Positions 3,001 through 62,290 of a stretch of DNA of 64,000 nt are shown here, one piece after another (positions within the stretch are counted from its first letter, which is position 1; every line of letters starts with the position of its first letter). The notes beneath the pieces were generated by a model that saw nothing but the letters and a program-made list of their open reading frames with translations, did no database searches and was not told the DNA's origin. A program made the position numbers and the translations under genes. Origin of the DNA: Paragordius varius. Taxonomy: Eukaryota; Animalia; Nematomorpha. The DNA is taken from the NCBI GenBank assembly GCA_964247055.1, contig OZ176054.1, forward strand, positions 1,302,001-1,366,000. Reading direction: 5' to 3'.

Positions 3001-3184
3001 GGTTATTTCTTTGTTCATTTTAATGTTTTTATACGCTAAAAGCGATATCTTTATTACATGATAAAATCAGTTACCCTATTAACAGCGCTAAGAACTTAGT
3101 ATTAATGATTTTGCTCTTTGCCAATTTTATTAGCTAATTTTGGGAATAATTTATAGTTTAGTCTAATTTCTTCTCGATTATGGG

Positions 3185-5960: not shown

Positions 5961-6244
5961 CCCATAAAAAACAAAAATATATTAATAAGAATAATTATAA
6001 TGGATAAAATAAACACTAGAATACATACTAACGAATATAAATGTAACCAAAAAATGAAACCAAAAATTTAACCAAAATAAAATAGATAAATTAATATATC
6101 AATAAATAAAAATAAAAAATTATAATGATATTTTTATTCTCAATATATGCGTAAAATAATTTTACCTTTTTATTGGGAAAATTCAAATTAATTATAATTG
6201 ACCTCAAAAAATCATGAAGCAAGGGCCTGGTAAAGTTTAAATTA

Positions 6245-7193
6245 TACTTGAGTTAAAAAATAATATTAATAAAAACACCCCAGTTTGTTCTATATTTTAT
6301 TAATATATTTTTATAATTACCGGATTCATCTATGGATTGTTCTTGCTTTGCATCTAGAAATGCGTAACGTAAATTAACATGTAATAAACATCACTTTTTT
6401 AACATTATTTGCCTAAACTATATTATGGCTATTTTAACTGATACCTTAAAATGAATAAAATAAATGCGATTTAAATGATGTTTTTGGTATTGGGTAAATA
6501 TCTTGTAGGCACAAAAACCGCCATTGTCTTTCTATATGAGTGAAAAACATATAGCTATTTAATCTCTAAGTTAGGACTTTTGACAAAAGAGACACCATTT
6601 ATTACAAAGTCTTCTTAATTTTTTAAGAATATTGCTTTATGTAAGTGTGTAACTTTGTACAAGTATTAACACAATTAAACAATTATTGTTATGATACAAA
6701 TCTAAATCAAAAATAAATTTTTTAAAAGCGATGTTTTATAAACATAGTTTTCTTTTGACATATTACCCATGTTTACTACTAATTTACATGTTTGAACAGC
6801 AAGATTTACCAACTTTGCAGTAACAAACGATATTTCTTAAATTGTAGGTTTATAATACCTGAGCTGGGAACTCGCTTCTTACGGAACACTTTTCGAAGGG
6901 TTCCTAACAAGCTTTCTCCGGGCACCCCGAGTTTCCTCGCCTCGCCATCTAAACAATAATTAATCAGCATTAGGATAAATTAAACTTGCACTCTTAAAAG
7001 CAAGCAAGAAATATTTAAAAAATCTTACCCGGAGGATCCACTCTCCTCTTCCGGAAGAAGCCCCACCGTTTCTTCCACCGGGGACAACAGGCTCGATTCC
7101 TCCTTGAATCAGCTGTTGTCCCCTCATCACTATCGTTCCTTGCAATCACTTCTTCTGCTTCTCTTTCCACACAACAACAACTTAGCGTTAAAA
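6245..7193 (-). pseudogene. Kinase-paralog 5' fragment (most of exon 1, exons 2 and 3), left arm of fold-back A
   Basis: The reverse complement reads [54 protein letters not shown], then gtaag intron, DGEARKLGVPGESLLGTLRKVFRKKRVPSS, intron, DAKQEQSIDES. These are homologous to exons 1-3 of the gene at 21946. The first codons, ATG and promoter are missing. Confidence 0.85.
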
Positions 7194-9833
7194 GTGATGA
7201 GGAGATGTTAGGGATTCTGGAAGGAATCGTAAGGGCTGTCCCCAGTGGAAGAAAAGGTTGAATTTCTTCTGAAAAAAGCAAAAAGGTGTTCCGCCGGGTA
7301 AGACTTTTTAAATTTCTTGCTTGCTTTTAATGCAATTCTAATTCATCCTAATGCTGATTAATTATTGTTTAGATGGCGAGGCTGAGAATGTCGGGGAGCG
7401 TGGGAAGAGCTAGTTAGGAACCTTGAGAAAAGCGTTCGGTAAGAAGCGGCATCTCGGTCTAGTTTCTAAACCTATAAAATTAATTAAACATTTTCTATTA
7501 CATCACTTTTAAAATTATTATCTTTAATTTAGATTTACATCATAAACTTAATTTAATTTGATCAAATATGCTTGAAAGTTTCCTTACACAACTAATATAT
7601 AGAATGCTAAGAAATATTCCTAAAAAATCAAGTAAAATTGTTGATAAATGGTTTTTCTCAAAAGTCTAAACTTAAAGATTAAATTAGATTTAAATGTTTT
7701 TTATTCATAGTAGGGAGAAAACAACGGCGGTTTTGTTTCTACATTATTTTTATTCAATGCCAAATAAACCAAATTAATCTTTTGTTTTATTCATCCCAAC
7801 GTATCTGTTATAAGATAATTTAGTTAAATTGTATTAAATAAAGATATTTTGAACTTTAACGCAGTACAAAATTAAAACATATTTTGCCTGATTACAACAT
7901 CGGTGTGGTATATTACACACTCACAAAAATGTATCCTGATGAAATATATATATTCTGATAGGAAAGTATCAGGATTATCATGGTTTTGGTTTAACCTTTA
8001 CGAGTTATCAAAGAAAGTTATTTACACTTTTGTGTTTGCTCCGTATAAAATTGTAAAAGGTGCGCAATTTTTTCAAATATATGTTTTGGTGAAAGCTAAA
8101 TGCTTAATTTCAAAAGATATCACAAAAAAATATAACATAAACTACATATATAAAGCAAAACGATATTTTTAAGTTTAAATTTCCAGATGTAAGCTCTAAA
8201 AGTCCCAATTTTTTGCTTGTTTTAAAATTACAGTTCTCTTAAAAACAAAATTTCGACATTGTGTTATAATTTCAAATAGGTTATTTTTATCGACTTAATA
8301 TATTTTTTAAAAATGCATACTTTAAAAATTTAATATTTAGCAAAATTTGAAGCGTTTTTAACCATGATGGAAACGATACAAACGGTTGAGATGCTATACC
8401 ATTTATATATATATAATTCGATAACGCCAAACATTTTTATCGCTCAGAATTTTGATTATAATTTTCGCTCCTTTTTAAATAAAAATTGTAGTTTACAAAA
8501 ATTCACCAAAATTTGCAAGCAAACAAACCTTTAGGTTAAAAATTCCATAGTAATGTTCAACATCATTAAACTATTTAAAAAAGGAGTTTTATTATATCTT
8601 AAAGCTTTATGTTTCCATTCTGCTTCAAAATAGTTTGCGCTTCAACAAAATGTCAAAAATTTGTTTATGCAAAAAATAAGAAAACTAATATAAATTAAAA
8701 TTTAAGAAAAAAATTAAGGAATATCATACCTCCCACCTAATGAGTATAGTCGTTAAAACTAATAATTTTTTAAAAAAGGTCATTTCGTTATCATATGCTA
8801 TATATATTAAATTTTATGTAAAAAGAACCATTAGCCTGTATCTTAGGATGCGAGATTTATAGTTTCGCCACTGCACCAAAGGTTGCAATTCTAAGAAGTT
8901 TGACCGATCCAAAACCCAATTTTATGTAACATACGAGTGGAAAATAAAATATTAACCAATTAAAAATAGGCCAATCTTAGTTCTTTACCGCAAAATGAAA
9001 CATTTCATTACAAATTATGTGGTTAGAGAGTACTATACTAAATCTTTTTTTGAAATAAAAGATAATTAGTATATATTTATATAAATTATTTTTTTAATTT
9101 CAAAAAGCAGTTCAAAAGTGGGCGCATAGAGGCGCACTTTTTTTCTAAAAACCCAGTACTATGCTGCGAAAAACAGCCTATCTGGTCACATTACGTTAAG
9201 ATAGTTTTAAATAGTATTTATAAAAAATATTACATGTTTTGCATTGATGTATTATTACATATTAATTTACGTTACGCATTTCTAGATGCAAAGCAAGAAC
9301 AATCCATATATGAATCAAGTAATTATGCAAAAAAATTAATTAATAACAAAATATATAACAAACAGGGGTGTTTTTAAATAATGTTAACTAAATATATTTA
9401 TGCAATAAATTCGATATTCGCCATCATGTTTAAAATTTGATATTTAATAAATTATGCGACACCTTTTTTACCACTTCCTTGTAAGATTCTAAAAAAATTT
9501 TTTTTTATTCAGTTTACTTCAGTACCTATCCGCAAGAGGAGGGCGCTGGTAATTTTTTTGAGCCTGCAAAAACAAGTAGATTACAATTATATTGTGATAT
9601 TTTTTTGGGGAAATAGATACTAAACAATCAAATTTAAATAAATCTTGAATTTTAGAGTATATTAATTTTAACCTTTATTTAGTAGTAAAAAAGAAATCGG
9701 TTAGCATAACTTCATCTCAGTTCAGTTCCGCTAAATCTTGTTAGCAAAAGAACTCATGTTATATATAAAATTATTATATAAATACTTTTTACAATTTATT
9801 ATAAAAATGTCAATATTTTAGCATCCAGTTATC
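7194..9833 (+). pseudogene. Kinase-paralog 5' fragment (part of exon 1, exons 2-5, start of exon 6), right arm of fold-back A
   Basis: Exon homologs at 7194-7297, 7373-7460, 9286-9318, 9513-9575, 9683-9757 and 9822-9833. In-frame stops: TGA in exon 1, TAG in exon 2, TAG at 9742-9744. Homology ends inside exon 6, and no kinase-domain exons follow. Confidence 0.85.
7855..9225. mobile_element. Non-coding insertion, probable non-autonomous transposon, in intron 2 of the right arm
   Basis: Present here and at about 60890-62135, but absent from the same site in copy B (35895 and 38345, empty site aaagata(a/t)tataagttttgc). Flanks aaagatatt / aaaaatatt resemble a duplicated target. No clear TIRs were seen. 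Confidence 0.35.
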
Positions 9834-21945: not shown

Positions 21946-24900
21946 ATGAACTTTAAAACATTTTTAACGATGTGTTGTTGTGGGAGTTGTTGCGTGGAAA
22001 GGAACGATGGTGAGGAGGGGACAACAGCCGATTCTAGGAGGAATCGAGCCTGTTGTCCCCGGTGGAAGAACCGGTGGGGGTTCTTCCAGAAGAGGAGGGT
22101 GAATCCTCCGGGTAAGATTTTTTTAAATATTTCTTGCTTGCTTTTAAGAGTGCAAGTTTAATTTATCCTAATGCTGATTAATTATTATTTAGATGGCGAT
22201 GTGGGGAAACGCGGGGTGCCCCGGAAGAGTTTGTTAGGAGCTTTGCGACAAATATTCCGTAAGAAGCGTCGTCCCCCTCCAGGTATTATAAACCTACAAT
22301 TTTTTAAGAAATGTCGTGTGCTACGGCAAAGTTGGTAAATCTTTTTTACTACCCAATAACTTTTATTACTATTTTTAAACAATAATAAGGATAATTACAT
22401 ATGGATGTCTAAAGTTAATAAAGTTAGCTTGCATAATTCATAAGCGATTAAAATATTGTGTTAAAAAAAACCTTAAAACAGAGAAAATGATTTAAAGTAC
22501 CAGCTTTGTTCCGTTATTCATCAAGTAATTTAAGGTTACGATATGTAAATATTTATAAAAAACGATATCGTTCCAATTAAATAAAAGATAGTCAAATAAA
22601 TTAAAATATTTTTGATTTATGGTAATTTGTTAACCTTTTTTTAGATGCCAAGCAAGAAAAACCAGGAAATGAATCAGGTAATTACAGAAAAATATATTGA
22701 TATTTAAGTATGAAGAATGTTTTGATTAACATGCCAAATATAATCAATTTAAATAAATACGATTCTGACAAAGTTTATTCAAATTAACTTTTAGTTGTTG
22801 TTATTTACAGGCAAATATTTTTTTTATTTAGTTTACCACAGTATTGTAGGGGCGCAAGAGGAGGGCGCTGGTGATTTCGAGCCTGCAAAAACAGGTAGAT
22901 TATAATTATACTTTGGTATTTTTTTGGGCATTATTCTATATATCAATACAATCAAATTTTAATAAATCTTGAATGTTTTAAAAGTATATTATTTTTAACC
23001 TTTATTTAGTTTCATCGCAGTATGGTTCGGCTAAATCTTGTTGGCAAAATGACTCATGTATTATATAAAATTATTATATAAATACTTTTTACAATTGTTT
23101 ATAAAACCGTCAATATTTTAGTATCCAGTTATCATGATGCAGTTGACCCTCCGAAAGCGGTGAGTAAATATTCATCTCTTAAAATTTTTCTTTTCATAAA
23201 CAAAATTAATGAAAAATATCATTACTATCAACATTTTTATATTTATTTTATGGCACAATAAAGATTATCAAAAACTTCCCGCCCGAATATAATGTTTGCA
23301 AAAAACTTGGAAAAGGGTAATTTTTAATTACTTCAAAATATTTTCTAAAATTGTAGTTTAATTACTTAATGATTTTATACTTTTTAGGGGCTTTGGTACT
23401 GTGTTCCTTGCCAAATATCGTAAAGAGTATGACGTAGCATTAAAAAAGATAAAACTCAAGAAGAAACAGCTTAATTACGAAGCGGTCAGTGAAATATTTT
23501 TATTGATGAACCTTACACATCCCAACATTGTCAAATATCTTGGCTCCAGCTTTTATAGACACAGTTTATGGGTAAAGGAGTTATCTAATTGCATGAATTA
23601 ATATTTACAATATGTGTCATTTCTCTTTCTATTAGTGCTTTTTTCATTATGCACAGATCGTCATGGAGAACATTGATGGGGTTACTTTGTGTGATTTGGC
23701 TCGTCAAAAGCTTTGCGAACCTTTACTAGCCTTAATCTGTCATCAGGTTAGTTTTATATTTTGTTACATTAAAATGCTGATTTCGACTATTTATCTTTCA
23801 CACGATTTTAATTAAGCGTATTTTGGATGATTTCCGATTTTAGTGTTTCAAAATATAAAGTTTATCGATGCATGCACTCAATATTGATGTGAATGTATGA
23901 TACCGAACAAATATACTGCTTAAATCTAACAATCTTGTAAAAATATGTATCAGGATTTTTTGGTTTCGGCTTTATGTATAGATATAATTATCATTTATAT
24001 GAAATGAATCGTATATATGAAATAATAAGTCTAACGCATACAATATTGAATGCCAAAGGATTCATAAAAATGTTTAGTTATCACATCTGGCTTTCAAACT
24101 ATAACCAAAGCGATAATCCATGATTGGACCTTAAACGCATATATATTGATGGTTTTTAGGCGAAATTTCTAATAATTTTACATAAAAAATGTACCCTTTT
24201 CAAAAATATTTATCTTCAATGTATAAACTAGCCATTAAATATTCAATCTGGTTTTTCGAACACAATTTCGAAATTTATAATTTTGTTTCGATTACAGTTA
24301 GGACTTCAAGTTGGTCCTTAAACATTTCAGGTTGGTCCTTTAGTCAATGCGTTTTAATTTCTCTCAAACTATCTATAATTTTTTTAACTGATTCTAATTT
24401 TATTGCTCAAATCTTCAAACATGTATCCATTTTAACCGAGTCCGAAAATGTGAGACTTAGGCCTATTAAATTTTAATATATTATAGATATTGTTTTGGTC
24501 TTTAAATATAGTTTATAATATTTTTTAAAAATTTTCTGAAACGATGATCGTAACTTCCACTAAATTTGGGCTATTTTGATATGGGGCAATAACATCGTCA
24601 TCTTTCTTATTGGTAAAGCTCAAAAGTAAAAATAGCAGAAAAATCCTGAAATATTTGTCCATAATATAACATTTCATCAAGATATTTGTGAACCCCGTAA
24701 TATACTGTGTTTGTTTTAATCTATGTTAGGCTAAAACATCATTTTTACGCTACAACAGGTTTTTAATATAAACATCAATTTAAACCTGTAAAACATTATG
24801 GCTATATAAGTGTAGGATATATTAAATAAAGAATTAAGAGTAAATTTAACTAAAAATTAACATGATGTTATATAACTTTTTGCCACTTTTTCATAGATCT

Positions 24901-27083: not shown

Positions 27084-30000
27084 AGTATGTATGAACTTGA
27101 ATTTTTTCATATATTAGAAACAATAAATCAAGGAACACACTAATAGCTATAATCGACAACAATTACAATAAAGTTATGATCAAATCTTGATACAATCTAA
27201 AACCTTAAGGGTTAGAGAAATGAATAAACTTTGCTAATATCAAAAAGTTAAAATATGCAATCATTAGTGTTGGTTTAGCTATAAAACACCAGCTGTGCTT
27301 ATTTGATACAGATCCCATTTTGATTATCATACAGCAAATGACAAACACACCTGGCTGATTTTGACAAAACTAGCCTCTTTTCTTTGATCATCAATTATTA
27401 TATTAAATTTTGTGTCTGAAAAAATAACATTTGCGGCACTCTTTACTATCACTAGAAAAGGTGTATGTTTGGACTAGAAGCTTATGTATGCTCTATCGAT
27501 TAAACATCAAACAAGGATTCGGAATATTGAAAGTTATGATTTCATGGGAAGGAGTGTGACATAAAACGCATAATTTATTCCATACATCATTCAAAAAACC
27601 TGGATAGGCTAGAAGACTAACAGTAAAATAATGTTCCGTCTCACATGGCATTCAAGTTTTATCAGAGCAGGAGCCAAATATGTAGATGCCCATTTGATTA
27701 CCTTTAATTGCATGTCCAAATCATTTTCCAAATAAAATATAAATTTCCAACTATTATTTTTATTTAGATGATTTTAATTTTTCGTTACCCTATTTCAAAC
27801 TCAATAATAGAAAATTCTGATGAAATTTATATATGCCGTTACATTATTTAAAGTGCTCTTGGTAAGAGGCATATAAATAATTTAAGTAAAAAAACACTTT
27901 TGTTTTCACTATATCAAAAAATTGTAAATCGTTTATCTTTATTTCTTGTAATCAGTCATTGAGCCTTATTATAAAGTATCATATGTTTAAAAAACGAAAT
28001 GCTTCCTTCTAACTATTAATAACATTTATAGAAATTAAAAGCTAGTTTGTCCATTGAATTTTATATTTTGGAGTATTCTACGGTTGTTGTCGCCATGTTT
28101 ATAATATAAGCTAAATTAGTATGCTATTATAATTCAAAATATTGTATTTTATTGTATTTAAATAATCGTTTTAATAAAATCCATTTGAGCTTTCCCTTAG
28201 AATATTTGGGGATTTTTTTACATGACAACTATATATTAAAAAAAAATTAATCAATAAATCGATGTAAAAAACCTGGTAAATTTTATGGAAAAAGTTTTCA
28301 CCTATTACCTCGTTTCCAACATACTTCATAATAGGTTATACGTTTCAAAAAATTTGTTAATAAACGTGCTAAACATTATTTGAATGGTTTTATTATATAA
28401 TGTCCAAATAATTTTACTAAAATTTAAGAGCTTATCTACGAATACTCCCGTATATTAATGCACCAAACCAAGCAAAGAAAACACGCTCTACGATGATATT
28501 TTTAATAAGGGTGGAAATGGTTTTCAGTCAACTATAATTTAAAACAATTTCTGTAAACTCGCCAAGTTTTTCCGCTCAGGTAAAATTAGGGTCATGACAT
28601 TTTGTTTAAACGAGTTTTTGAATTCTAAATGATGAATAAATAAGTTAACTAAGTCAAGGTTTAAAAATCACGTGCAAAACAATGAATAACCACCATTAAC
28701 AATTAAAATTCATTCTTGAAATTTTTTAAAATTTCCTCGAACACGAATCATACTTAAGGTAATTTTAAGAAATCATATAAAATATATTTTTGGAATATTT
28801 CAATTGTTATGCTTTATTAATTTTTATGCGTCCTCTTTATCTGTTCAAGAATGCATTTTGATTCGTGATATATCATTCAAAATAGTAGTGAAAACTTAAT
28901 GCATGTTAATATGTTTTACATTTACATCAATAATTAACAATGGACATAGGAAACAAACCCATGAAACAAAAGCCTGATCCTCATTAAATATATTTAACTA
29001 ATCGATGTAAATAGCTCAAACTTTGTGTACAATGATTTAAAAAATATAAAACAAAAAAGTTTTTTTTAAACCAAAAGCTTTTTAATTTATTTTTTTTACT
29101 CATAAATCATAATTATATTAAAATAATTTATATTATTTTTAAATTAGTTTTTTACAATATTTTGAGTTTATTCTGACTATTAAGAGCCATTACATCACAT
29201 TGATTTAAATGACTTACTACCATTTGAAGATTCAATCTTTTGCACTATCTAAAAAATTTTGAGTTTAAAGTTGAATTGGGGCCAAAAAATTTCGATAAAC
29301 ACCAAGAAAAAATTTTGGGTATTAGACCATTTTTTTATACTATTTATGTCCTTCAATGTAATAAATTAAAATGGCACTTAATAGTCAAAGTTGTCTATAT
29401 TTATCGAACTGGCCACTTATTTTATTAATGTTACAACCCGTTGTTTGAAAATAAATAGAATATTTGATTCTATACCATCTTTACACAATTTTGACCAAGT
29501 AATGTTAATTTCAATTTTGGAAAGACATCTGATGTGTGATATTGTCATAAAATTATAAAAATATTATACCGACGCCCATAAATATGTGTCTCAAAAAGAA
29601 TTTATCTGGCTATATGTGATTGTCATACACCTCAGGTGCAAATGTAACACTTTTGTTCATATTCGAATTCATGGCGCAAGTAATGTAACTATAAAATAAT
29701 AGTTTGTTTCCCAAAATACTGTAATAAAGTATCCCTATAATATTAACAAATATTGTTGTCCGGAAAGTGTAAAATCCACAACCAGCTTAAGTAATAATTA
29801 TATTATTAATTTTTGAAAAAAAATCAAGTTAATATTAAATTTTTTTATTTTATATAAGAACTATATATTGAGACCATTATTCAAAATAACTTTACAGGGT
29901 GGTAGTAGAACTATAGCTAATCCATATTTGTACTTTAAGTTCGAATTGGGTCTATACAACCCACACAAAGTTTAAGTTGATATTAAACTAAAACTGTTTA

Positions 30001-30634
30001 AATTTAAGCTTCTATTCTAATTAAAATTTTATATAAATAAGCCAAATTCATAAAGTTTAGATTTAAAATAAGTTTCATATCAAACTAGTTCGATGCTATT
30101 TTTATTTTAGAACATTATATTGAAACATGTATATTTGACTTTAAAATAAATCTATTTTTTTAATTCACAAACATTGATCAAAAGAGAAAAAATAGTTTTT
30201 TCATTACTTTATTTAGTCATTGGACATGTATTGGCTAAATTGTTATGTAGTTCTACGAAATGAGTAATATGAAGTATTTTCTAAATTTTTTTATAATTTG
30301 ATTCATCAATGTTATACTCGTACAAACTTTTCCTATGGTTTCGATTTGTGCCATATTCTTAGAAATATTTAAACAGGCTTGGGATCCCCAAAGACCCAAT
30401 TTGAGTCGGAAGACTGATATTCAGCTATGCTTGAAATTTTAAGAGAATTTACATGGCTGGTTATTTCTTTGTTCATTTTAATGTTTTTATACGCTAAAAG
30501 CGATATCTATATTACATGATAAAATCAGTTACCCTATTAACAGCGCTAAGAATTTATTAATGATTTTGCTCGTTGCCAATTTTAGCTAATTTTGGGAATA
30601 ATTGATAGTTTAGTCTAACTTCTTCTCGATTATG

Positions 30635-33400
30635 GGGATAATAATAATAATTACATTATATGATTCCCTCTTTCGAGCAGTCACACGTAAGCTATTTCGC
30701 CATCTGTCTATGGCGTCATCGTGTTTTAGGTTCAGTTTTGCCATGTCCCTCTTAATTGTTTCTATCCATCGCGTTTTAGGTCGCCCTCTTCCCCTCTTAC
30801 CTTTCACAATATAATAATCAATCTTTTTACCAATGTAATTATTATCTCTTCTTTCTACATGTCCAAACCATCTTAGACGATTTACCATAATCTTGCGTTA
30901 CTGGTTTAATTTTCGTACCTCCAATTATGTAGACATTTCTCTTGTCATTCCTCATTACACCGCACATTAATCTAAGCATTCTCATTGCAGTAACCTCAAC
31001 ACGCTCTGTTCTGATTTCTTTATTGCCCATGTCTGTGAGTTGTACATCATTGTTGGCTATATAACAGCACTGTTAATCTTACCCCTGACTTTTAGGCCAA
31101 TATTTTTATTGCACAATACATTTGAGAACTTTTTATAATTTGCCCAACTATTTCGAATTCTTAAATTTATATCAGTTAAAGAACCATCTGTTGCTAAAAT
31201 CGCTCCTAATGCATTCCTCCAGACTTTTTAATACCCACCCTTCTAAATGCAATTCTCGTTTTTTCCCACCGAAATTTATAAGTTCCGTTTTCTTTTTATT
31301 AACTTTTAAACCGCATCGTAGTAACATATCCCATTTACCCACCAATCCTTGAAATTCATGCAACTCGTCTGACAGCACTATTAGGTCGTCTGCATAAAAA
31401 ATACCAGTATCCATGTTGCCCCATTTTTAAAATTTACTCCATGCATACTATAAGTAGTAACGGACCGATTTTTGACCCCTGATAGGCGGTTTGACTTATT
31501 TCGATAGGATGTGAAACTTCCTGGTATGTTTTAACTTTGGTATGGTGTGACTCGTACATGCTTTTTAGAATTTTATGTAACTTTCAGGAACATTTTTTTG
31601 CCTTAAGCACCACCATATTCTATTCCGTGGTATTCTGTCAAACGCCTTTTCAATACAATTAAAATACCATGCAACTATATGCTTTTCAATTATACTTCTT
31701 ACTGCGTGAATCGGATCAATGGTGGATTTTCCTGGAATAAAACCAAATTGATTACCCTCTATACTAACCATTTTTCTCATTCGTTTCTCTAGTACTTTCT
31801 CAAATAACTTCATTGTATGCCACATCAAACTTATCCCTCTGTAATTATTGCAATCGCTAACACCTTTATCTTTAATAATAAGAAAAGTGCAACCCTTCTT
31901 CCATTCGGTTGGTATCATACCTGTAGTAACTACATTATTAAAAATATCCCTCAAAAATTCAATACCTTTCTCTGAAATTATTTTCAAACAGTATATAATA
32001 ATATGGTCTGGACCTGCAGCGTTATTTATAGACATCTCTTCTAAACCAGCCTGGATTTCTTCTTTTGTTATACTTTCAATATACGCAGATGTATAATCTG
32101 GTGTTTAGGGTTGTCACTGACGCCCAATTCAAGGTCCTCCCCCTTTTCAATGTTTTCGCTTCCTCAACGAGTTATTTTCCCTTTTTATCTTCAATAGCGG
32201 TCGCGTAGAGGGCAGTCCAGCTTTCGTCTGTGTCTTAGTCGAACAATTATATAAACTTTGTTTAGACCTAGCTTACTCTTTAACTCCTCATATAATGATG
32301 CCGTCTTTTCCTTTTTCACCAATCTTACAAGCCTTTAAAGCTCCTTATTAATCCTTTTACATTTTTCCTTGTCTTCCGCATGGTGGGTTAACCTCCACAT
32401 TTTAAAAGCTTTACTTTTCTCTCGCGATTTCAGAATTATTTTTTCGTCTTTCAGCCATGCCTCTCTATAAACCTGATTTTTACCACCTTTCATTCCACAC
32501 ACCTTAACTCCCGCCTCTCTATTGCCACATGAGATTAAACACTTCCGAATCGCGGTTCCTGTCTAGCATGCCTACCGTTTCTACAAATCGTTCTTTACTG
32601 TTTCTTAAGGAATCAAATTTAATCACCTTCGGCGCTATAAACTTATATTTTTTAACTATTATCTGTCATATATTTACACAAAAAATATATTATGTTGTGT
32701 GCTTATCTGCAAGTTAGGTGTGACTTTGCAGTCCACAACAAACTTAAAAACTCCTGCGGTACCAGAATATAATCGATTTGTGACTTCTTATTTCTACTTT
32801 CGTTGGTAGTTAAATAGCTATCCCTTTTAGTAAAAAAGGTGTTTGTTATAGCTAAGTTATAAAATTGAGCAAATTTTAATAAACTAGACCCTTTTTCATT
32901 TATAACCCCGTAACCTTTTCCGCTGTCCTATTTTGTCCCACATGGCCATTGAAATCACCACAAAATATTATTTCTCTGTCTTTCGTTAATGAAGTCTTTC
33001 TGTGTCTAGCAAATTAATTTATCCTTTTCAGGTTTAGTTAACCCTATCTGAAACGCTTTGTAAAAACCCTCTTATTTAACAGGTCGACACTTATAACTCT
33101 ACTGTCAGCACGTCTAACATCAATTACTTGAGTGGCAAATCATGGACACACTATTATGGTGACCCCAGTTATAACCTGAATAAAACATTTTATAGTTACC
33201 ATCTAATGTTTTAGTGCTGTTTCCACGGTATCTGTCCTGAATGCACAAAAAATTACCTTTTTACCCTCATAGTTTCAACTAAATCATATAACTTACTTCT
33301 TAACTCAACATTTATACTGGCAAAACACACTCTGCAACCTTCCGTATCTCTACTGGCCCCTACCTCCGTGTAGCGATTGGCCAGGTCTGGCCTGGACGCC
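30635..33400 (-). mobile_element. Degenerate RTE LINE, copy B (same insertion as 3185-5960)
   Basis: Same position in the unit, same motifs (YADDL, QFGFIPGKS, RLRWFGHV) and largely the same disruptions. Confidence 0.9.
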
Positions 33401-33965
33401 TTACAAAAAAACCTATAAAAATCAAAAATACAATTAATAAGAATAATTATAATGGATAAAATAAACACTAAAACACATACTAACTAATATTTAAATGTAA
33501 CCAAAAAATGAAACCAAAAATTAAACCAAAATAAAATAGATAAATTAATATATCAATAAATAAAAATAAAAAATTACTCATTTATGATATTTTTATTCTA
33601 TGCGTAAAATGATTTTATTTTTTTATTGAAAATACCCAAATTAATTATAATTGACCTCAAAAAATCATGAAGCAAGGGCCTGGTAAAGTGGATTCTAAAC
33701 ATATCATATCTTAGGTTTTATTGTAACAATTTCTCTTAAATTTGGCGAGTCCATTAAATCTATAAAAGGATGTTAGACGTACCTTTTTGAATAATTATTG
33801 CATCAACGCTTTTCTGCTCATTCTAAATATGCCTCAAATAATAAATGTAATCTGTGGAGTTATTATTAGCTTATTGTTAACTATGTATATTTAGGCTAAT
33901 TCCAATCTTTTTAATCTATTGATCAATGATAAAAATTAAAAATTTCGCAACAAAATTGATTATAC

Positions 33966-35176
33966 CTGGATGGATATTGGTGTAGGATGGTTCTCCATCA
34001 ACCATCTCAATGCAAATGATGCGCAGGGTTTTTGCAGGCTCAAAATAATCACCAGCTCCCTCTTGCGGATAAAAAGTACTGTGGTAAACATATAAAAAAA
34101 GAAAATATTTTCTATAATCTACAGTTAAGGGGTTTATAGTGTCGCTTCATTTATTTAATATTAAACTATTTTACCATAATAGTGAAATGGATAATATCGA
34201 ATTATTTAAATTATACTTGAATATTATTAATAAAACCACCCCAGTTTGTTTTATATTTTATTAATATATTTTTTTAATTACCTGATTCATCTATGGGTTG
34301 TTCTTGCTTTGCATCAAGAAATGCGTAACGTAAATTAACATGTAATAAACATCACTTTTTTAAGATTATTTGCCTAAACTATATTAAGGCTATTTTAACA
34401 GATCCTTTAAAATGAATAAAATAAAAAATGCGATTTAAATGAAGTATTTGGTATTGGGTAAATATCTTGTAGGCACAAAAACCGCCATTGTCTTTCTATA
34501 TGAGTGAAAAACTTATACCCAATTAATCTCTAAGTTAAGACTTTTGAGAAAAGATACACCATTTATTCTAAAGTTTTCTTAATTTTTTAAGAATATTTCT
34601 TTATATAATATTTATTGGTTGTGTGTACTTTGTACAAGCATATTTAACACAATTAAACCATTATGGTTATGATGCAAATCTAAATCAAAAATAAAATTCT
34701 TAAAAGCGATGTTTTATAAAAATGGTTTTCTTTTGACATATTACCCATGTTTACAACTAATTTACATGTTTAAACAGCAAAATTTACCAATACCGTAACA
34801 GAAAATGTTTTTTATCTATTTTATAGGTTTATTACCTGGACCGGGACGACGCTTTTTACGGAACACTTTTCTCAAGGTTGCTAACCAGCTCTTCCCATGC
34901 TCCCCGTCAACCTCGCCATCTAAACAATAATTAATCAGCATTAGGATGAATTAAACTTGCACACTTAAAAACAAGCAAGAAATATTTAAAGAATCTTACC
35001 CGGAGGATCCACTCTCCTCTTCCGGAAGAACCCCCACCGTTTCTTCCACTGGGGACAACAGGCCCGATTCCTCCTCTAATCAGCTGTTGTCCCCTCATCA
35101 CTATGATTCCTCCCAATCACTCTTTCTGCTTCTCCTTCAACACGAAAACTACCACAACAACAACACAGCGTTAAAT
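33966..35176 (-). pseudogene. Internally deleted kinase paralog (exons 1-4 fused to the end of exon 11), left arm of fold-back B
   Basis: Minus strand: exon 1 part, intron, exon 2, exon 3 (34282-34314), exon 4 (34028-34090, YHSTFYPQEGAGDYFEPAKT), running directly into [20 protein letters not shown] (33966-34027) and a gtataa donor. The exon 3 and exon 4 acceptors are mutated to TG. Confidence 0.85.
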
Positions 35177-36760
35177 GTGATGAGGGGACGTCAGGGGATT
35201 CTGGAAAGAATCGTAAGGGCTGCTGTGCCAAGTGGAAGAAACGGTGGGGGTTCTTCCTGGAAGAGGAGAGTAGATCCTCCGGGTAAGATTCTTTAAATAT
35301 TTCTTGCTTGTTTTTAAGTGTGCAAGTTTAATTCATTCTAATGCTGATTAATTATTGTTTAGATGGCGAGGAGAATGTCGGGGGTGGCAAGAGCTGGCTG
35401 GGAACTTAAGAAAAGTGTTCCGTAAGAAGCGGCATCCCGGTCTATGTAATAAACCTATAAAATTAATTACAAACACATTGTCTATTACGGTATTGGTAAA
35501 TTTTGCTGTTCAAACATGTAAATTAGTCTTGTAAACATGAGTGTCAGAAAACCTTTCAAAACCCTTTTAAAAAATTTATCTTTGGTTTAGATTTGCTTCA
35601 TAACCATAATTTAATTAAATTGTACAAAGTTACCTTACACAACTAATAAATAGAATGCTAAGAAGAAATATTATTAAAAAATCAAGAAAACTTGTTGATA
35701 AATGGTTTATCATTCAAAAGTTTAGACTTAGAGATAAATTAGATTTTTATGTTTTTCATTCATATAGGAAAGGCGCGTTTGTACCTACATGATTTTTAGC
35801 TAATATCAAATAAATCAAATTAATCTCATTTTTTGTTTAATTCATCCCAACGTTATCTGTTATAAGATAATTTAGCTAAATTGTATTAAAAAAAGATAAT
35901 ATAAGTTTTGCATTGATGTTTATCACAAGTTTATTTACGTTACGCATTTCTAGATGCAAAGCAAGAACAACCCATAGATGAATCAGATAGTTATAAAATT
36001 ATATTAAGAATAAAATATATAACAAACTGGGGTGTTTTTATTAAAGGATATTTCTAACTTAACTAAATATATGAACACTTCGATTCAATTTGGGGTATCT
36101 AAATACCCAAGACTAAATTTGAATTCGGATTTTTTAAAAACTACTGAAAGAAACGGTCCCAATTTAAATTTATGCTTCTATCCTAATAAAAATTATATAG
36201 ATATGCCGAAATATCTAAATAAAATTTTCTTTTGAAAAAAAAGTTCTATGTCAAACTACTTTGACGCCATTTTCATTTTACAAAAATTTTGCAAAATATC
36301 GTCTTCATTTACTTTGAAGGGTAATATTAAAGCAATTTTTTTATTTAAATTACATCTAACATTGATAGAAATAGAAAAAGCGTTATTCCGTTGTATTTTT
36401 CAATTTTACCATTCCACACATGTCACGTTGACGAAATTTCTACCTCTCGGTTTTTAGCCAATAGGTAATATTAAGTATTTTTAAATAAATTTTTTATATA
36501 TTTCAGTTTATTATTATATAAATGCAATATTTTGCTATGGTTTCGATTTCTTCCATATTTTTGAAACAATTTAATTATACAGGCCTGGAGTATTTAACTA
36601 CTCCATAAAAAAGGTTTGATATTAAATAAATTATGCCACACTATTTTTACCACTTCCTTGTAAGCTTTTAAAAAAATAATTTCTCTTTTATTTAGCTTAC
36701 TACAGTATACATATCCGCAAGAGGAGGGCGCTGGTGATTTTTTTGAGCCTGCAAAAACAA
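34028..36760. repeat. Long inverted repeat (fold-back B) with a 140-bp near-perfect core
   Basis: 34911-35050 is the reverse complement of 35231-35371 except for one extra base and two substitutions. Inner loop is 35102-35176. Outer arms include exon 3 and exon 4 homologs on both sides; a roughly 540-bp insertion lies at 36070-36610. Confidence 0.9.
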
Positions 36761-36920: not shown

Positions 36921-37239
36921 TTACGGAACGCTTTCTTCAAGCTTTCCAACCAGTTACTCCGACGCTCATCCTCACTCTCATCGCCATCTAAACATTAATT
37001 AATCAGCATTAAGATGAATTAAACTTGCATTAAAAGCAAGCAAGAAATTTAAAAGTCTTACCCGGCAGAACACCCACTTTTTTCTTTGGAAGAAACGCCA
37101 GCTTTTCTTTCACTTGGGACAACAGGCCTTCCGATTCCTCCTAGAATCACCTGTTGTCCCCTAATCACCATCATTCCTCCCAATCACTCTCTCCGCTTCC
37201 CCTTCAACACGACAACTACCACAACAACAACACAGCGTT
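36921..37239 (-). pseudogene. Inverted kinase exon 1-intron 1-exon 2 fragment
   Basis: The reverse complement gives TLCCCCGSCRVEGEAERVIGRNDGD, then ccgg/gtaag intron, then tttag/atggcgatgagagtgag...gcgttccgtaaa. Confidence 0.85.
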
Positions 37240-37383
37240 CCCTCATATATGGAGGTTAATAAACAGCGTCTTAGCTTATGCTTATCATCATTATTTTCAA
37301 ACATAATTTTCGGAAACGTTACTTCAGTGTACTTTCCCACAAACCTATTGTGAGGTGAATGGAAAGCTAATCGATGATTACCT
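37240..37383 (+). repeat. About 145-bp segment duplicated at 39502-39650
   Basis: cctcatatatggaggttaataaacagc.tcttagcttatgcttatcatcat...gtgaatggaaagctaatcgatgattacctc occurs at both sites. Confidence 0.75.
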
Positions 37384-37517
37384 CCAAATCTCAAAAGTGT
37401 CTTTTGTAAAATTAATTATTCCAACATATAGGGATTGATTTTAATATTTAGAAACGGTAATTTGATGTTTCTAGAAATTTGAACTGGTGATTTGAAGCAT
37501 AAAAGTGTTTTTATGTT

Positions 37518-38884
37518 ATGAACTTTGAATTTTTAACGCTGTGTTGCTGTTGTTGTAGTAGTTGTCGTGTTGAAGGGGAAGCGGAAAGAGTGTTTGGGAG
37601 AAATGTTGGTGATGAGGGGACGTCAGGGGATTCTGGAAGAATCGCACGGGCTGTTGTGCCAAGTGGAAGAAAAAGTTGAATTTCTTCCGAAAAAAGCAAG
37701 TGGGTGTTCTGCCGGGTAAAACTTTTTAAATTTTTTGCTTGCTTTTAATGCAAGTTTAATTCATCTGTTGCTTAATTAATGTTTAGATGGCGAGGTTAAG
37801 AGTGAGGGTGAGCGTCGGAGTAGCTGTTTGGGAACCTTGAGAAAAGCGTTCCGTAAGCGGCATCCCGATCTAAGTGATAAACCTATAAAATAAATTACAA
37901 ACACATTGTCTATTACGGTATTGGTAAATTTTACTGTTCAAACATGTAAATTAGTCTTGTAAACATGGGTAATATATCAAAAGAAAAATCATTTTACAAA
38001 GCCCTTTTAAAAAATTTATCTTTGGTTTAGATTTGCTTCATAACCATAATTTAATTAAATATGCTTGTACAAAGTTACCTTACACAACTAATAAATAGAA
38101 TGCTAAGAAATATTCTTAAAAAATCAAGAAAACTTGTTGATAAATGGTTTATCATTTCTCAAAAGTTCAAACTTAGAGATTAAATTGAATATTTATGTTT
38201 TTCATTCATATAGGAAGAAAAACGCTTATGTACCTTCATGATTTTTAGCTAATATCAAATAAATCAAATTAATCTCATTTTTTGTTTTATTCATCCCAAC
38301 ATATCTGTTATAAGATAATTTAGCTAAATTGTATTAAAAAAAAGATATTATAAGTTTTGCTATGATGTTTTATCACAAGTTTATTTACGTTACGCATTTC
38401 TAGATGCAAAGCAAGAACAACCCATAGATGAATCAGATAGTTATAAAAAAATTATATTAAGAATAAAATATATAACAAACTGCGGTCTTTTTATTAATAG
38501 ATATTTCTAACTCAACTAAATATATTAATGTAATAAATTCGATATTCTCCATTTCGCCATCATGTTAAAAAGGTTTGATATTAAATAAATTTTGTCACAC
38601 TATTTTCACCATTTCCTTGTAAAATTTTAAAAAATTAATATCTTTTTTAGTTAGTTTACCACAGTACTTTATGTCCGCAAGAGGAGGGCGCTGGTGATTT
38701 TTTTGAGCCCGCAAAAGTAGATTATAATTATATTGTGATATTTTTTGTTTGGCAATTATTTTATACATCTAAACAATTAAATTTAAATAAATCTTGAATT
38801 TTAGAGTATTTTAATTGTAACCTTTATGTAATAGTAAACAAGAAATCGGTTAGCATAGCTTCACCTCAGTTTAACTCCGCTAAT
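37518..38884 (+). pseudogene. Kinase-paralog 5' fragment with intact ATG (exons 1-4, part of 5), frameshifted
   Basis: ATG at 37518 (MNFEFLTLCCCCCSSCRVEGEAER...). A 1-nt deletion near 37638 leads to TGA at 37677-37679. Exon 3 donor is mutated, and there is a break in exon 5 at about 38884. The block 37880-39207 repeats 35450-37239. Confidence 0.85.
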
Positions 38885-39207
38885 TTACGGAACGTTTTCT
38901 TCAAGCTTTCCAACCAGTTACTCCGACGCTCACCCTCACTCTCGCCATCTAAACATTAATTAATCAGCATTAAGATGAATTAAACTTTCATTAAAAGCAA
39001 ACAAGAAATTTAAAAAGTCTTACTCAACGGAACACCCGCTTGCTTCTTTTGGGAGAAATTCAACCTTTTCTTCCACTTGGCACAGCAGCCCTTGTGATTC
39101 CTTCCAGAATCCCCTGACGTCCTCTCCGTCACCATCATTCCTCCCAATCACTCTCTCCGCTTCCCCTTCAACACGACAACTACCACAACAACAACACAGC
39201 GTTAAAA
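38885..39207 (-). pseudogene. Inverted kinase exon 1-intron 1-exon 2 fragment (second copy)
   Basis: Near-duplicate of 36921-37239, ending in the same fold-back junction cacagcgttaaaa/gtgatgagggg as at 7193, 35176 and 60138. Confidence 0.85.
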
Positions 39208-39274
39208 GTGATGAGGGGACGTCAGGGGATTCTGGAAGGAATCGTAATGGCTGCTGTGCCAAGTGGAAGAAAAG
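39065..39274. repeat. Compact hairpin, about 68-bp stem and 75-nt loop
   Basis: 39065-39132 (cttttcttccacttggcacagcagccc...cccctgacgtcctctccgtcac) is complementary to 39208-39274 (gtgatgaggggacgtcagggg...ggctgctgtgccaagtggaagaaaag) with about five differences. Confidence 0.85.
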
Positions 39275-42049
39275 AATTTTTATGACTTGGGTGAGACGGA
39301 ATAGTCAGAAGGTATACTCTCATTTAACCATCTCACTGTAAATTATAAAAATGAACCCGATGCCAACCATATTACATGAAATCAATATGCCTCAATTGAT
39401 ATCTTGGGAATTTGTTTCAACAAAAATTATTTATCAAATTATGGACTGAATTAATTAATAACAAAAAAATATTAAGTAGAACTTCTTAAAAAACCTCTCT
39501 CCTCTCATATATGGAGGTTAATAAACAGCATCTTAGCTTATGCTTATCATCATGCGCTATCCTATTTTCAAACATAATTTTCGGAACTTCAGTGTACTTT
39601 CCCACAAACTTATTGTGATGGTGAATGGAAAGCTAATCGATGATTACCTCATCTGACAAAATCAGTTAAATTTTCTATAGAGTTTATTGATGTATTTTTT
39701 GCTTTTATGCTAAATATTAAAAAAAATTATTTTTTAGATTATCTAAGAGATAATGACCCGAGCCAAGCCGAAAATCCCTACTTGCAGTCAAAGTTTTATA
39801 CGTTTCATCAATCTGTATTTGGGTAACGCTCAAAGCCGTCCCTAAGTATCCAAATTCATAAAAATATGTAATTGCCAAAAATTCTATTATTAAAACAAAC
39901 ATTTGTTGTGTGTTGTAAAGCCCTTCCTCACCGTAGATGCCATAATTAAATTGTCCAACATTCATAGAATTGGACCTCACAAATAATTTAGTTTCTGCCA
40001 AATTTTATATCTATTAATTAACTTTATAATTAGCTTTGCTATTAAATTGTTTCATATATGTAAATAGAACTAATTGTCCAAAACAATATGACACAATATT
40101 ATATTATCTTGTATTTATATGTTTGGATTTTAGTTTTAAATATATCATATAGACAATTTTTAAAAAATATTACTTAGAACAAAGTGAATTCATTGATAAC
40201 TACTATTAATGTTGACTTGACTAACTGAAATATAAAATTTAGTTTAAAAAGGTAAATTTGACTTTCGTAGTCTTTTTAGTAATCAAATATCTTGATTTGT
40301 ATTGAACTTTTTATCAGTATATTACTGTAACCTGGTGTTATTTAGTAATTAAACTATGGACAATAATATTTATTTAATACACTGTCTAAATAAAATATTT
40401 TATTATTATATGTTATAAACTCCCATGAAGATGTTATGTGCACCGCAAAATTATTATAAAGTCATAATTGATTTCATACAACTGTCGAAATGTACCATAG
40501 AAACTGAAGAAAAACAATCTTCTTAAGATATATTATGTATAAAATAAATAAATTTTAAGCGATATCTACAGGTATTTTGAAGTCATGCAATTATATTTAT
40601 AAATATAATTGATTATTCAAAATCAAATACAGACAAATAAATATAATCTCCTCGTATATAAATTGAGTATTGACTTATCTATGATTTCCGCTTTTCTTAT
40701 TAATAATTTAATTAGTATCAGTGCAATGCAACAAATAATATCCTGATTAATTATATTTTGCCTAATAGGAATCTCATGGTGTTTATGGTTTAGCTTTAGG
40801 CTATAGTTCAGGAACAATATTCACACTTTTGTCCTAAATTTCCATATGAAAAAAATCACAAAAATAACTCATCATATGCTATATAAATTTTGCATCATTC
40901 CAAAAACATACATACACATACACTATATTTGAGGCTATATATTTAAATTTTAATTTTTTTTATTTGAGCTCTGAAATTTTTTTTTGACCCCTCTAAAACG
41001 GGCAAGTAAAAATATATGTATATTGCTTAAAAAATTAATTTATTAGAAAAATATTGTTGAAGCGAAATTAGGTAATTTCAAGCATGGTATTTAAAATAAA
41101 AGAACAATAGTTGATAATTTTTTAAAAGATATCTACAATAATAAGAACTGGTGCCTCAAAATATGATGTACGTAAAAATGTAATTAAATACTAATAATCA
41201 ATAAATTTTGTAATTAATAACAAACTATTTTTATAAACTTAAACTTTTACCAAAAATTATATGATTTTAGGCGCTATTCCCACCTATACGCAATTGCCAC
41301 AAAAGTGGAAATAACTTTCTTGAAACTCTCCAAAAAATCATTATGAAAATTTTTGTGCGCACTGTGTGTACATATTTTCTGTGATTTCGTTATCATACAA
41401 GCCATTTAAAATACATATTCTATGGCAATTACTCATAGGACCAAGGTAAAAGATTAAAATTAAAAATTGGTTGTTAGCTCAAGATAAATTTTAATCTTTT
41501 AAAAGACAAAACAATCTTTATTAAATTCTGTTTTGATTAAATTTTTAAAGTGTATTTTATGATTAAAAGTAAATGTAAATAGTAAAAAACATTAAATATT
41601 ATAAAAACACCTCTTCTGCCATTCTTATTCCTCTGAACATATCTGTTCGATCAGATTGGGCAATTTATTGTACAAGACCCTAACCTTACAATCTTTTGCG
41701 GAAACATCGGAAGAATGTTAAATTCCCAAAATAAAATAGTATAAAAATGGTTTAATTAACTGCATAAGATTCGCTAGGTACTATTTTGTCAACCAATAAT
41801 AATGAGTAACAATATGATAATTTTACTGACTACACTTATCGAAGGCAATTCAAGACCTTTAACAATTGACTCCAATTCTTGGCAAGAATCTGTGGATTTC
41901 ATCGAATGCATTGAAGGATATTAAACTATTGATGTTGATTATTAAAAGATTAAGTCTTTTGCATGGGAACATCAGGTACCCATGATGGCCCTATAAAATC
42001 AAGATAAGTTGGCCTATTATTTTTTGTACAAAAATGTAAAAAATAGAAA

Positions 42050-58927: not shown

Positions 58928-60138
58928 CTGGATGGATATTGGTGTGGGATGGTTCTTCATCAACCATCTCAATGCAAATGATGCGCAGGGTTTTTGCAGG
59001 CTCAAAATAATCACCAGCTCCCTCTTGCGGATAAAAAGTACTGTGGTAAACTACATAAAAAAAGAAGATATTTTCTATAATCTACAATTAAGAGGTTTAT
59101 AGTGTCGCTTCATTTATTTAATATCAAACTATTTTACCACAATAGTGAAATGGATAATATCGAATTATTTAAATTATACTTGAGTTAAAAAATATTGTTA
59201 ATAAAAACACCCCAGTTTGTTTTATATTTTATTAATATATATTTTTAATTACCGGATTCATCTATGGATTGTTCTTGTTTTGCATCTAGATATGCGTAAC
59301 GTAAATTAACTTGTAATAAACATCACTTTTTTAACACTATTTGGCTAACCTATATTAAGGCTTTATTAACATATACTTTAAAATGAATAAAAAAATGCGA
59401 TTTAAATGCTGTATTTGGTATTCGGTAAGTATCTTGTAGGCACAAAAACCGCCTATGTCTTTCTATATGAGTGAAAAACATATACCTAATTGATCTCTAA
59501 GTTAGGGCTTTTGAGAAAAGAGACACCATTTATTACAAAGTCTCCTTAATTTTTTAAGAATATTTCTTTATATAATATTTATTAGTTGTGTGTAACTTTG
59601 TACAAGCATATTTAACACAATTAAACAATTATTGTGATGCAAATCTAAATCAAAAATAAAATTTTTAAAAGCTTTTATAAAAATGGTTTTATTTTGACAT
59701 ATTACCCATGTTTACAACTAATTTACATGTTTGAACAGCAAAATTTACTAATACCGTAACAGAAAATGTTTTTTATTTATATATAGGTTTATTACCTGGA
59801 CCGGGATCCCGCTTCTTACTTAACACCTTCTTCAGGCTTCTCGCCCAGCTGCGCCACTCACCATCACTTTCAGCCTCGCCATCTATATAATTAATCAGCA
59901 TTAGGATGAATTAAACTTGCACTCTTAAAAGCAAGCAAGAAATATATAAAGAATCTTACCCGGCGGATCCACTCTCCTCTTCCGGAAGAAATTTTCCATT
60001 TTCTTCCACTGGGGACAACAGGCCTTCCGATTCCTCCTAGAATCACCTGATGCCCCCTCATCACCATCATTCTCCCAATCACTCTTTCCGCTTTTCCTTC
60101 AACATGAAAACTACCACAACAACAACACAGCGTTAAAT
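58928..60138 (-). pseudogene. Internally deleted kinase paralog (exons 1-4 fused to the end of exon 11), left arm of fold-back C
   Basis: Same exon 4/exon 11 fusion as 33966-34090 (58928-59051). Exon 3, exon 4 and intron 1 splice signals are retained here. Confidence 0.85.
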
Positions 60139-62290
60139 GTGATGAGAGGACGTCAGGGGATTCTGGAAGGAATCGTAAAGGCTGCTGTACCAAGTGGAAG
60201 AAAAGGTTGATTTTCTTCCGAAAAAAGCAAGTGGGTGTTGCCCCGGGTAAGACTTTTTAAATTTCTTGCTTGCTTTTAATGCAAGTTTAATTCATCTCAA
60301 TGCTGATTAATTAATGTTTAGATGGCGCGGTTGAGAGTGAGGGAGAGCGTAGGAGTAGCTGGTTGGGAAGCTTGAGAAAAGCGTTCGGTAAGAAGCGGCA
60401 TCTCGGTCAAGGTAATAAACCTATAAAATAAATTAAACATTTTCTGTTGCGGTATTGGTAAATTTTACTGTTCAAACATGTAAATTAGTCTAGTAAACAT
60501 GGGTAATATATAAACAAAACATCACTTTTAAATATCTTTGGTTTTACATCATAACCATAATTTAATTTGATTAAATATGCTTGGACAAAGTTTTCTTACG
60601 CAACTAATAAATAGAATGCTAAGAAATATTCTTAAAAAATCAAGAAAAATTGTTGATAAATGGTTTATTTATCATTTCTCAAAAGTCTAAACTTAGAGAT
60701 TAAATAAGATTTAAATGTTTTTCATTCATAGTAGGAAGAAAACAACGGCGGGTTTGTATCTACATTATTTTTATTTAATGCCAAATAAATCAAATTAATC
60801 TTTTGTTTTGTACATCCCAACGTATCTGTTATAAGATAATTTAGTTAAATTGTATTAAAAAAAGATATTTTGAACTTTGACGCAGTACAAAATTAAATAT
60901 TTTGTCTGCTTTACAAGATCGGTGTGGTATATTACACAGTCACAAAAAAGTATCTTGATGAAATATATATATTCTGATAGGAAAGTATCAGGATTATCAT
61001 GGTTTTGGTTTTAACCATCAAAGAAAGTTATTTACACTTTTGTGATAAGTGCTTGGTATAAAATTGTGCGCAATTTTTTCAAATATATTTTTTGGTGAAG
61101 GTTAAATGCTTTATTTCAAAAGATATAACAAAAAAATTTAACATAAACTACATATATAAAGCAAAAAAATATTTTTAAATTTAAATTTCCAGATGTGGAC
61201 TCTAAAAGTCCCAATTTTTTGCTTCTTTTAAAATGTACAGTTCTTTTAAAAACAAAATTTCGACATTGTGTAATAATTTCAAATAGCTAAATTTTGATAT
61301 CGAATTATATTTTTGCATACTTTAAAAATTTAATATTTAGCAAAATTTGAAGCGTTTTTGACCATGACGGAAACGATACAAACGGTTGAGATGCTATACC
61401 ATTTATATATATAATTCGATAATGCTAAACATCTTTATCGCTCAGAATTTTGATTAAAATTTTTGCTCGTTTTTAAATAAAAATTGTATTTTTTTACAAA
61501 ATTCACCGAAATTTGCAAGCAAACAAACCTTTAAGTTAAAAATTCTCAACCTATAGTAATGTTCACCATCATTAAACTATTTATGCGCTTCAACAAAATA
61601 TCTCAAATTTGTTTATGCAAAAAATAAGAAAACTAATATAAATTAAAGTTTAAGAAAAAAATTAAGGATATCATACCTCCCACCTAATGAGTACAGTCGT
61701 TAAAACTAAAAATTTTTTAAAAAGGCAATTTCATTATCATATCCTATATATAATAAATTTTATGTAATATGTAGGAATAACAATTTTCTATATAATTTTC
61801 CGTTTGATAATTATAACAAAAAAACTTTCTAAACCTGCTCAAACATTTATTAAAATATCATTATTAATTTTGTTAACTCTAAATTTTGAGGCACCTATTT
61901 TTGCGGAAGCCCTGAGAAAAAGAGCCATTAGCCTGAATCTTAAGATGCGAGATTTATAGTTTCGCCCTGCACGATTGCAATTCTAAGAGGTTTGACCGAT
62001 CCAAAACCCAATTTTATGTAACATACGAGTGGAAAATAAAATATTAGCCAATTAAAAATAGGCCAATCTTAGTTCTTTACCGCAAAATGAAACATCTTAC
62101 AAATTATATGGTTATATTTACAGAGAGTACTATACCATGTTTAAAATTTGATATTTAATAAACTATGCGACACCTTTTCTACCACTTCCTTGTAAGATTC
62201 TAAAAAATAATTTCTTTTTTTATTTAGTTTACTACAGTACCTATCCGCAAGAGGAGGGCGGTGGTAATTTTGAGCTTGCAAAAACAAGTA
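58990..62290. repeat. Imperfect long inverted repeat (fold-back C)
   Basis: Inner closure is ccctcatcac (60055-60064) with gtgatgag (60139-). Arms pair 59400-60064 with 60139-60890; exon 4 homologs near 59000 and 62228-62285 pair across the insertion. Confidence 0.85.

Follow-up and report, generated by a model that had tools for sequence, protein, structure and literature searches.

Palindrome B, a fold-back of kinase-gene fragments in the Paragordius varius genome, contains a stem of about 140 bp that is real, well above chance and without equal among the six fold-backs compared. Within it we demonstrate a tract, its direction and its relative age: sequence of the left arm (B_L) has replaced that of the right arm (B_R) in this copy, and most probably this is a neutral, recent and short conversion or template-switch tract within a pseudogenic palindrome. 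The 64,000-nt stretch analyzed here (hereafter the window) covers C5:1302001-1366000 within a 110.5-Mb genome with a GC content of ~30%.

A unit of 25–27 kb occurs in three copies inside the window, each with a degenerate LINE (RVT_1 match) and a fold-back, namely A at ~6800–7500, B with its core at 34800–35480 and C at 59770–60440. Two Ser/Thr kinase genes, K1 (starting at 21946) and K2 (starting at ~46440), sit between the units on the plus strand; both are intact-looking, with downstream exons matching Pkinase when the exons were translated and domain-scanned one by one. Further fragments, D and E, occupy 36979–39288, and fold-backs F and G belong to a paralogous cluster at C5:1.62 Mb. The fold-back arms correspond to the 5′ end of the kinase family, comprising part of exon 1, the 80-nt intron 1, exon 2, intron 2 and the 36-nt exon 3. 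The family has this segment in more than 20 copies, all of them in kinase clusters on C5 apart from one on C3. The junction between left and right copies is identical in fold-backs A, B, C, E, F, and G, indicating that the inverted duplication arose once and later spread through segmental duplication.

Units A and B were 96–99% identical over their LINE-bearing 6 kb (1–6236 versus 27440–33689) and only 84% identical over the fold-back part (6236–7501 versus 34205–35488), with a break in the alignment and a 516-nt offset at 6236/33689–34205; the two parts of the unit thus differ in age or history. Among the fragments of the cluster, only D_R (37240–37800) retained the family ATG and ~40–100 nt of upstream sequence, making it the one most likely to own a promoter. 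It formed an 88% inverted pair with E_L, whose region spans 38940–39140 (37639–37766 versus 38973–39100, with a loop of ~1.2 kb), and the right arm of fold-back E (39141–39288) ended at AGTGGAAGAAAAG, the short block at which the B tract starts. The arrangement of B, D and E was mirrored in the L031/L032 cluster (C5:1612000-1631999), which held two tandem fold-backs with a period of 1585 bp plus a kinase-domain fragment, F_L and G_L being identical across the aligned segment. At L010 (C5:1133326-1136663, with a duplicate in L011), the 5′ ends of two kinases, one of class II and one of class I (the two sequence classes are defined below), stood head-to-head ~820 nt apart, so divergent pairing of family members extends beyond the tight fold-backs.

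The whole of palindrome B spans 34202–36066, with arms at 34202–35105 and 35175–36066, each of ~930 nt. In B_L, read on the minus strand, the stem arm at 34911–35050, the donor, was delimited by pairwise alignment and by family alignments with GT/AG boundaries, and consists of the end of exon 1 (35050–35000), intron 1 (34999–34920) and the first 9 nt of exon 2 (34919–34911). Its counterpart in B_R, the recipient, lies on the plus strand at 35231–35371 (end of exon 1, 35231–35282; intron 1, 35283–35362; start of exon 2, 35363–35371) and was identified by alignment, triplet test, trees and diagnostic sites. Toward the center of the palindrome, both arms continue into unconverted exon 1 sequence: that of B_L (35051–35105, minus strand) is of the K1-like class and differed from its B_R counterpart at 13 of 39 sites, while that of B_R (35175–35230, plus strand) is of class II and resembles A_R and C_R, with 3/42 differences from C_R against 13/39 from B_L. 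The spacer of ~70 nt between them (35106–35174, minus strand) is present in the left copy only according to the alignment to K1 and K2, and is a remnant of the Cys-cluster coding start with which exon 1 begins, its translation opening with LTLCCCCGSF. Just beyond the tract, exon 1 of B_L carried an AWCAGCTGWT-type word (35081–35090); A_L has one too, and K1 reads CAGCCG at this place.

Both B arms are dead kinase-gene fragments. B_L has an in-frame TAG at 35076–35078 and lacks an ATG, B_R is frameshifted, and alignment to K1 and K2 showed that fold-back B lacks the family upstream region and with it the native promoter and start codon.

A global alignment of 34911–35050 (140 nt, reverse-complemented) with 35231–35371 (141 nt) reproduced the pairing given in the preliminary description, with one 1-nt indel and two substitutions. 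Relative to B_L, the right arm has one additional T (35258), A in place of G (35272) and T in place of C (35337), which leaves perfectly paired stretches of 27, 13, 64, and 34 bp. Differences between the arms numbered 2/140 sites within the tract, compared with 39/202 in the arm sequence beside it (Fisher P = 9e-8). In sliding windows, their identity was 0.96–1.0 in the tract and mostly 0.5–0.84 outside it, although two better-conserved stretches occurred beyond the tract, in intron 2 near 34811/35472 and in exon 3. At exon 3 (34290–34330 and 35950–35990), B_L has two bases in common with B_R, D_R and K1 that A_L and C_L do not share, and a second, very short exchange between the arms, at these two sites only, is possible on this pattern. 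As had been claimed, the arms of A and C are more different from each other than those of B, with 21/135 and 20/132 differing sites, respectively, in the same columns. Over the tract columns, arm identity was 84.4% in A, 98.6% in B, 84.8% in C, 89.2% in D, 92.6% in F and 75.4% in G.

The stem had also been described as covering the coding end of exon 1, yet only 52 nt of it are exon 1. The remainder is the entire 80-nt intron 1 and 9 nt of exon 2, so that 57% of the stem is intron; the longest perfect run, of 64 nt, is intronic over 54 nt. Intron 1 itself is well conserved between arms (84–93%; 34920–34999 and 35283–35362, also 6950–7030, 22112–22195, and 59890–59970), while exon 2 beside it is less so (59–78% between arms, but 86.5% in G); K2 and G_R have an unrelated intron in this position. 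Frequent homogenization, fast-evolving exons or an embedded element may be responsible for the strong conservation of intron 1. No Rfam match was obtained at gathering thresholds in the whole window, and a search of 34000–36300 gave a single chance-level match (E = 0.65), hence the conserved intron is not accounted for by a known small-RNA gene.

The end of exon 1 and intron 1 fall into two sequence classes across the family. Class I contains K1, five to six other family genes, A_L, B_L and part of C_L; class II contains K2, A_R, C_R, D, E, and F. K1, through its exon 1, intron 1 and exon 2 (21946–22343, plus strand), represents the intact class I gene of the type carried by A_L and B_L. The three fold-backs of the window differ in state: class I sequence occupies one arm of A, part of the left arm of C and both arms of B. 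Along B_R, 10 consecutive class-diagnostic sites (35195–35223) were of the right-arm-like class II, the following 21 (35242–35320) were of class I and the same as in B_L, and past 35371 the arm was again of mixed class. With B_L and C_R as parents, a triplet test found 34 consecutive B_L-like sites in B_R lying between C_R-like ones (permutation P < 5e-5). The per-arm phylogeny that had been suggested was carried out as a partitioned IQ-TREE analysis: the tract united B_L and B_R (UFboot 94) inside class I, while on the flanks B_R grouped among class II copies, apart from B_L. Diagnostic runs, triplet test and trees agree that one arm of B was overwritten by the other, as first proposed, and B alone shows such a near-perfect tract, the other five fold-backs having arms that are 75–93% identical. 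A GENECONV-style permutation over 91 sequence pairs was set aside and replaced by these three analyses: at least 25 pairs reached the minimum P because intron 1 is conserved family-wide.

Of the two strings put forward earlier as shared by the B arms and absent from those of A and C, one proved specific to B and the other only in part what it had seemed. CTTGTTTTTAAGTGTG was found in the window in the two B arms only, and a 23-mer that includes it has exactly two occurrences in the 110-Mb genome, one per B arm. GATTCTTTAAAT, although missing from A and C as stated, is shared with the family genes L009, L010, and L015-17 and so is not confined to B; it is the ancestral class I state. Two T's in TGTTTTTAAGTGTG are carried by both B arms and by no other copy. 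Genome-wide, the best matches to the B_R tract were B_L (98%) and A_L (94%), with all others at 91% or below. That the best match is B_L, and that B-specific bases are shared, implies that B_L was copied onto B_R after gaining mutations of its own, and that there was no third donor. The sequence class of B_L runs unbroken into its own flanks. The comparison confirmed left to right as the direction of transfer, and its placement after B had diverged from its sister fold-backs A and C.

Each tract edge falls inside a block that the two classes share unchanged, AGTGGAAGAAA at one edge and the 3′ splice site with ATGGCGAGG at the other, which would fit homology-guided resolution. Three states of B_R (T 35258, A 35272, and T 35337) were missing from all 20 other aligned copies and none is class II; they correspond to a post-event divergence of ~1.4%, indicating that the event is recent. 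This divergence is of about the same order as that of the youngest duplication in the window, between the LINE-bearing parts of units A and B. All three post-event changes fall on the right arm, a bias that is not significant with n = 3. With respect to GC-biased conversion, the converted sites comprised 9 AT-to-GC against 5 GC-to-AT changes, from one event only.

Exchange was also seen elsewhere in the kinase family. A_L (6801–7141, minus strand) and K1 (21999–22343, plus strand) differed at only 2/39 and 7/140 sites over exon 1 and intron 1 (7/140 being the value for the tract columns), against 54/171 (~32%) farther out, a pattern suggestive of ectopic exchange, across 15 kb, between this arm and the intact gene. 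C_L and D_L were class mosaics. These mosaic patterns indicate that sequence exchange is common in the family, independently of hairpins.

Several other origins were considered for the near-identity of the B arms. Assemblers are known to struggle with palindromes whose spacers are short, and reads from one arm could have corrected the other during assembly or polishing, the true arms being as unlike as those in A and C. Such an artefact is very unlikely here: the classes differ by ~15% plus several indels, which is excessive for mis-mapped reads that span unique flanks; the tract edges are sharp and lie inside pre-existing identity blocks; the three private differences of B_R persist; and the adjacent arm sequence was not homogenized. 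Still less probable is an origin of both tracts from outside the palindrome, either by a third, unseen family copy that overwrote each B arm independently or by a mobile foldback-type element whose arms are maintained by transposition. The family does provide more than 20 copies of the segment, with frequent exchange among them, but no other genomic copy exceeded 94% identity to the tract and two B-specific bases are found in the B arms only. As for a mobile element, the copies are limited to kinase clusters, consist of kinase exons and introns, share one junction and follow segmental duplication. A foldback transposon or MITE, which would have dispersed copies with TIRs and target-site duplications and a sequence unrelated to the host gene, was rejected on these grounds.

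A functional origin deserves more weight but is still unlikely. The fold-back would be a working hpRNA/endo-siRNA locus that restrains the kinase family, and homogenization, following an updating of the left arm from a class I kinase gene, would have been favored because it restored a Dicer substrate. In its favor, folding of the region, as had been proposed, predicted a structure of −432 kcal/mol for the 681-nt B RNA (z = −32.6), and long hairpins were predicted for A (−321 kcal/mol) and C (−343 kcal/mol) as well if transcribed, all with z < −26. A_L and B_L carry K1-class exon 1, and A_L shares 15 perfect 21-mers with exon 1 of K1. Piwi-domain loci and double RNase III loci number two each in the genome, making RNAi possible; a search for the RdRP family gave no match, and neither did its positive controls. 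The interleaving of amplified genes with fold-backs of their own exons also resembles the hpRNA/target clusters of D. simulans (PMC10317233). Against this, most of the B stem and of its longest perfect run is intronic, as detailed above, and intron 1 is sense-oriented in the downstream arm whichever strand is transcribed; splicing could thus strip out most of the duplex. None of the 31–32 exon-derived 21-mers of each B arm matched perfectly any of the family genes compared (K1, L014-17, L009, L010b, K2, and L010a), the minimum being 1 mismatch to class I genes and 4–6 to K2 and L010a, with medians of 2–5. Exact matches of the exonic stem portion reached at most 16 nt in a gene and 18 nt in A_L. 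A native promoter and an ATG are missing from the fold-back, both of its arms are dead by the stop codon and missing ATG of B_L and the frameshift of B_R, and the imperfect arms of the five sister fold-backs (75–93%) argue that there is no general upkeep of pairing. Overall, the sequence evidence weakly disfavors the stem as a functional Dicer substrate. An extended form, in which the fold-backs would suppress an amplifying kinase family through hairpins that update themselves, is improbable. In such a system, conversion from an active class I gene would refresh one arm (A_L, B_L and partly C_L) and arm-to-arm transfer, completed in B only, would restore the perfect duplex, so that the hairpin tracks its target. 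If true, this would be a case outside Drosophila of an arms race between hpRNA and target, in which tracking operates by gene conversion. The locus would gain importance only if small RNAs derived from these stems proved to control the kinase family.

The neutral origin favored above can be outlined as follows. Long ago, the 5′ end of a Ser/Thr-kinase gene of the tandemly amplified family was duplicated once in head-to-head inverted orientation, and several copies descend from that event, B among them. After B had split from A and C, ~80–140 nt of B_L was copied non-reciprocally onto B_R, within 35231–35371 and at a minimum over 35242–35320. The tract arms are 180 nt apart. Intrachromosomal gene conversion over a short tract may have been the route, or else the replication template may have switched between the close arms; the sequence does not tell these two processes apart. 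B_R afterwards acquired one insertion and two transitions. We infer that the event was a neutral by-product of inverted-repeat mechanics and was not selected. Transcription across both arms, should it occur, would yield an RNA that folds into a long hairpin whose perfect runs, intronic for the most part, reach 64 bp. The case is clean and datable: an imperfect inverted repeat became a near-perfect hairpin in one step. It bears on the possible origin or repair of hairpin-RNA loci and proto-miRNAs in the absence of selection on every base pair.

Drosophila hpRNA loci are born from inverted duplications of their target genes, and some of their clusters are interleaved with paralogues (PMC10317233, PMC10292708). 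B likewise derives from a nearby gene that is amplified in tandem and was partly duplicated in inverted orientation; it is located in a multi-copy cluster interleaved with intact paralogues, and its predicted stems, and the RNA duplex that they would form, are long. Unlike in the Drosophila loci, the B stem lacks perfect target complementarity, full siRNA-target complementarity being absent for the family genes compared, and its best part is intronic. Moreover, hpRNAs are defined by a transcript, Dicer-dependent small RNAs, fully complementary siRNAs and target de-repression, and for B the transcript, the small RNAs and the de-repression are hypothetical. Arm-to-arm gene conversion in palindromes is known from the primate Y and the mammalian X (10.1101/800185, PMC8600007). 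As in those palindromes, transfer in B was non-reciprocal and took place between the inverted arms of one palindrome, and the arms are sisters inside the tract although the arms of the sister palindromes diverged earlier. However, the Y and X arms exceed 10 kb with >99% identity, compared with ~0.9 kb for the B arms and ~0.1 kb for the tract, and those palindromes are continuously maintained and contain expressed genes, whereas B shows a single patch in dead gene fragments. Replication template switching also homogenizes imperfect inverted repeats, a process known as quasipalindrome correction (PMC8794818, PMC8604942). Published events of this kind mostly involve tens of bases, against 80–140 nt in B. 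As in quasipalindrome correction, the arms of B are close to each other, ~21 sites and indels were gained together, an imperfect repeat became near-perfect and a better hairpin resulted, presumably without selection. With its inverted arms, discrete tract, phylogenetic incongruence and shared copy-specific derived bases, the B tract is a clear and ordinary case of a known DNA-copying process.
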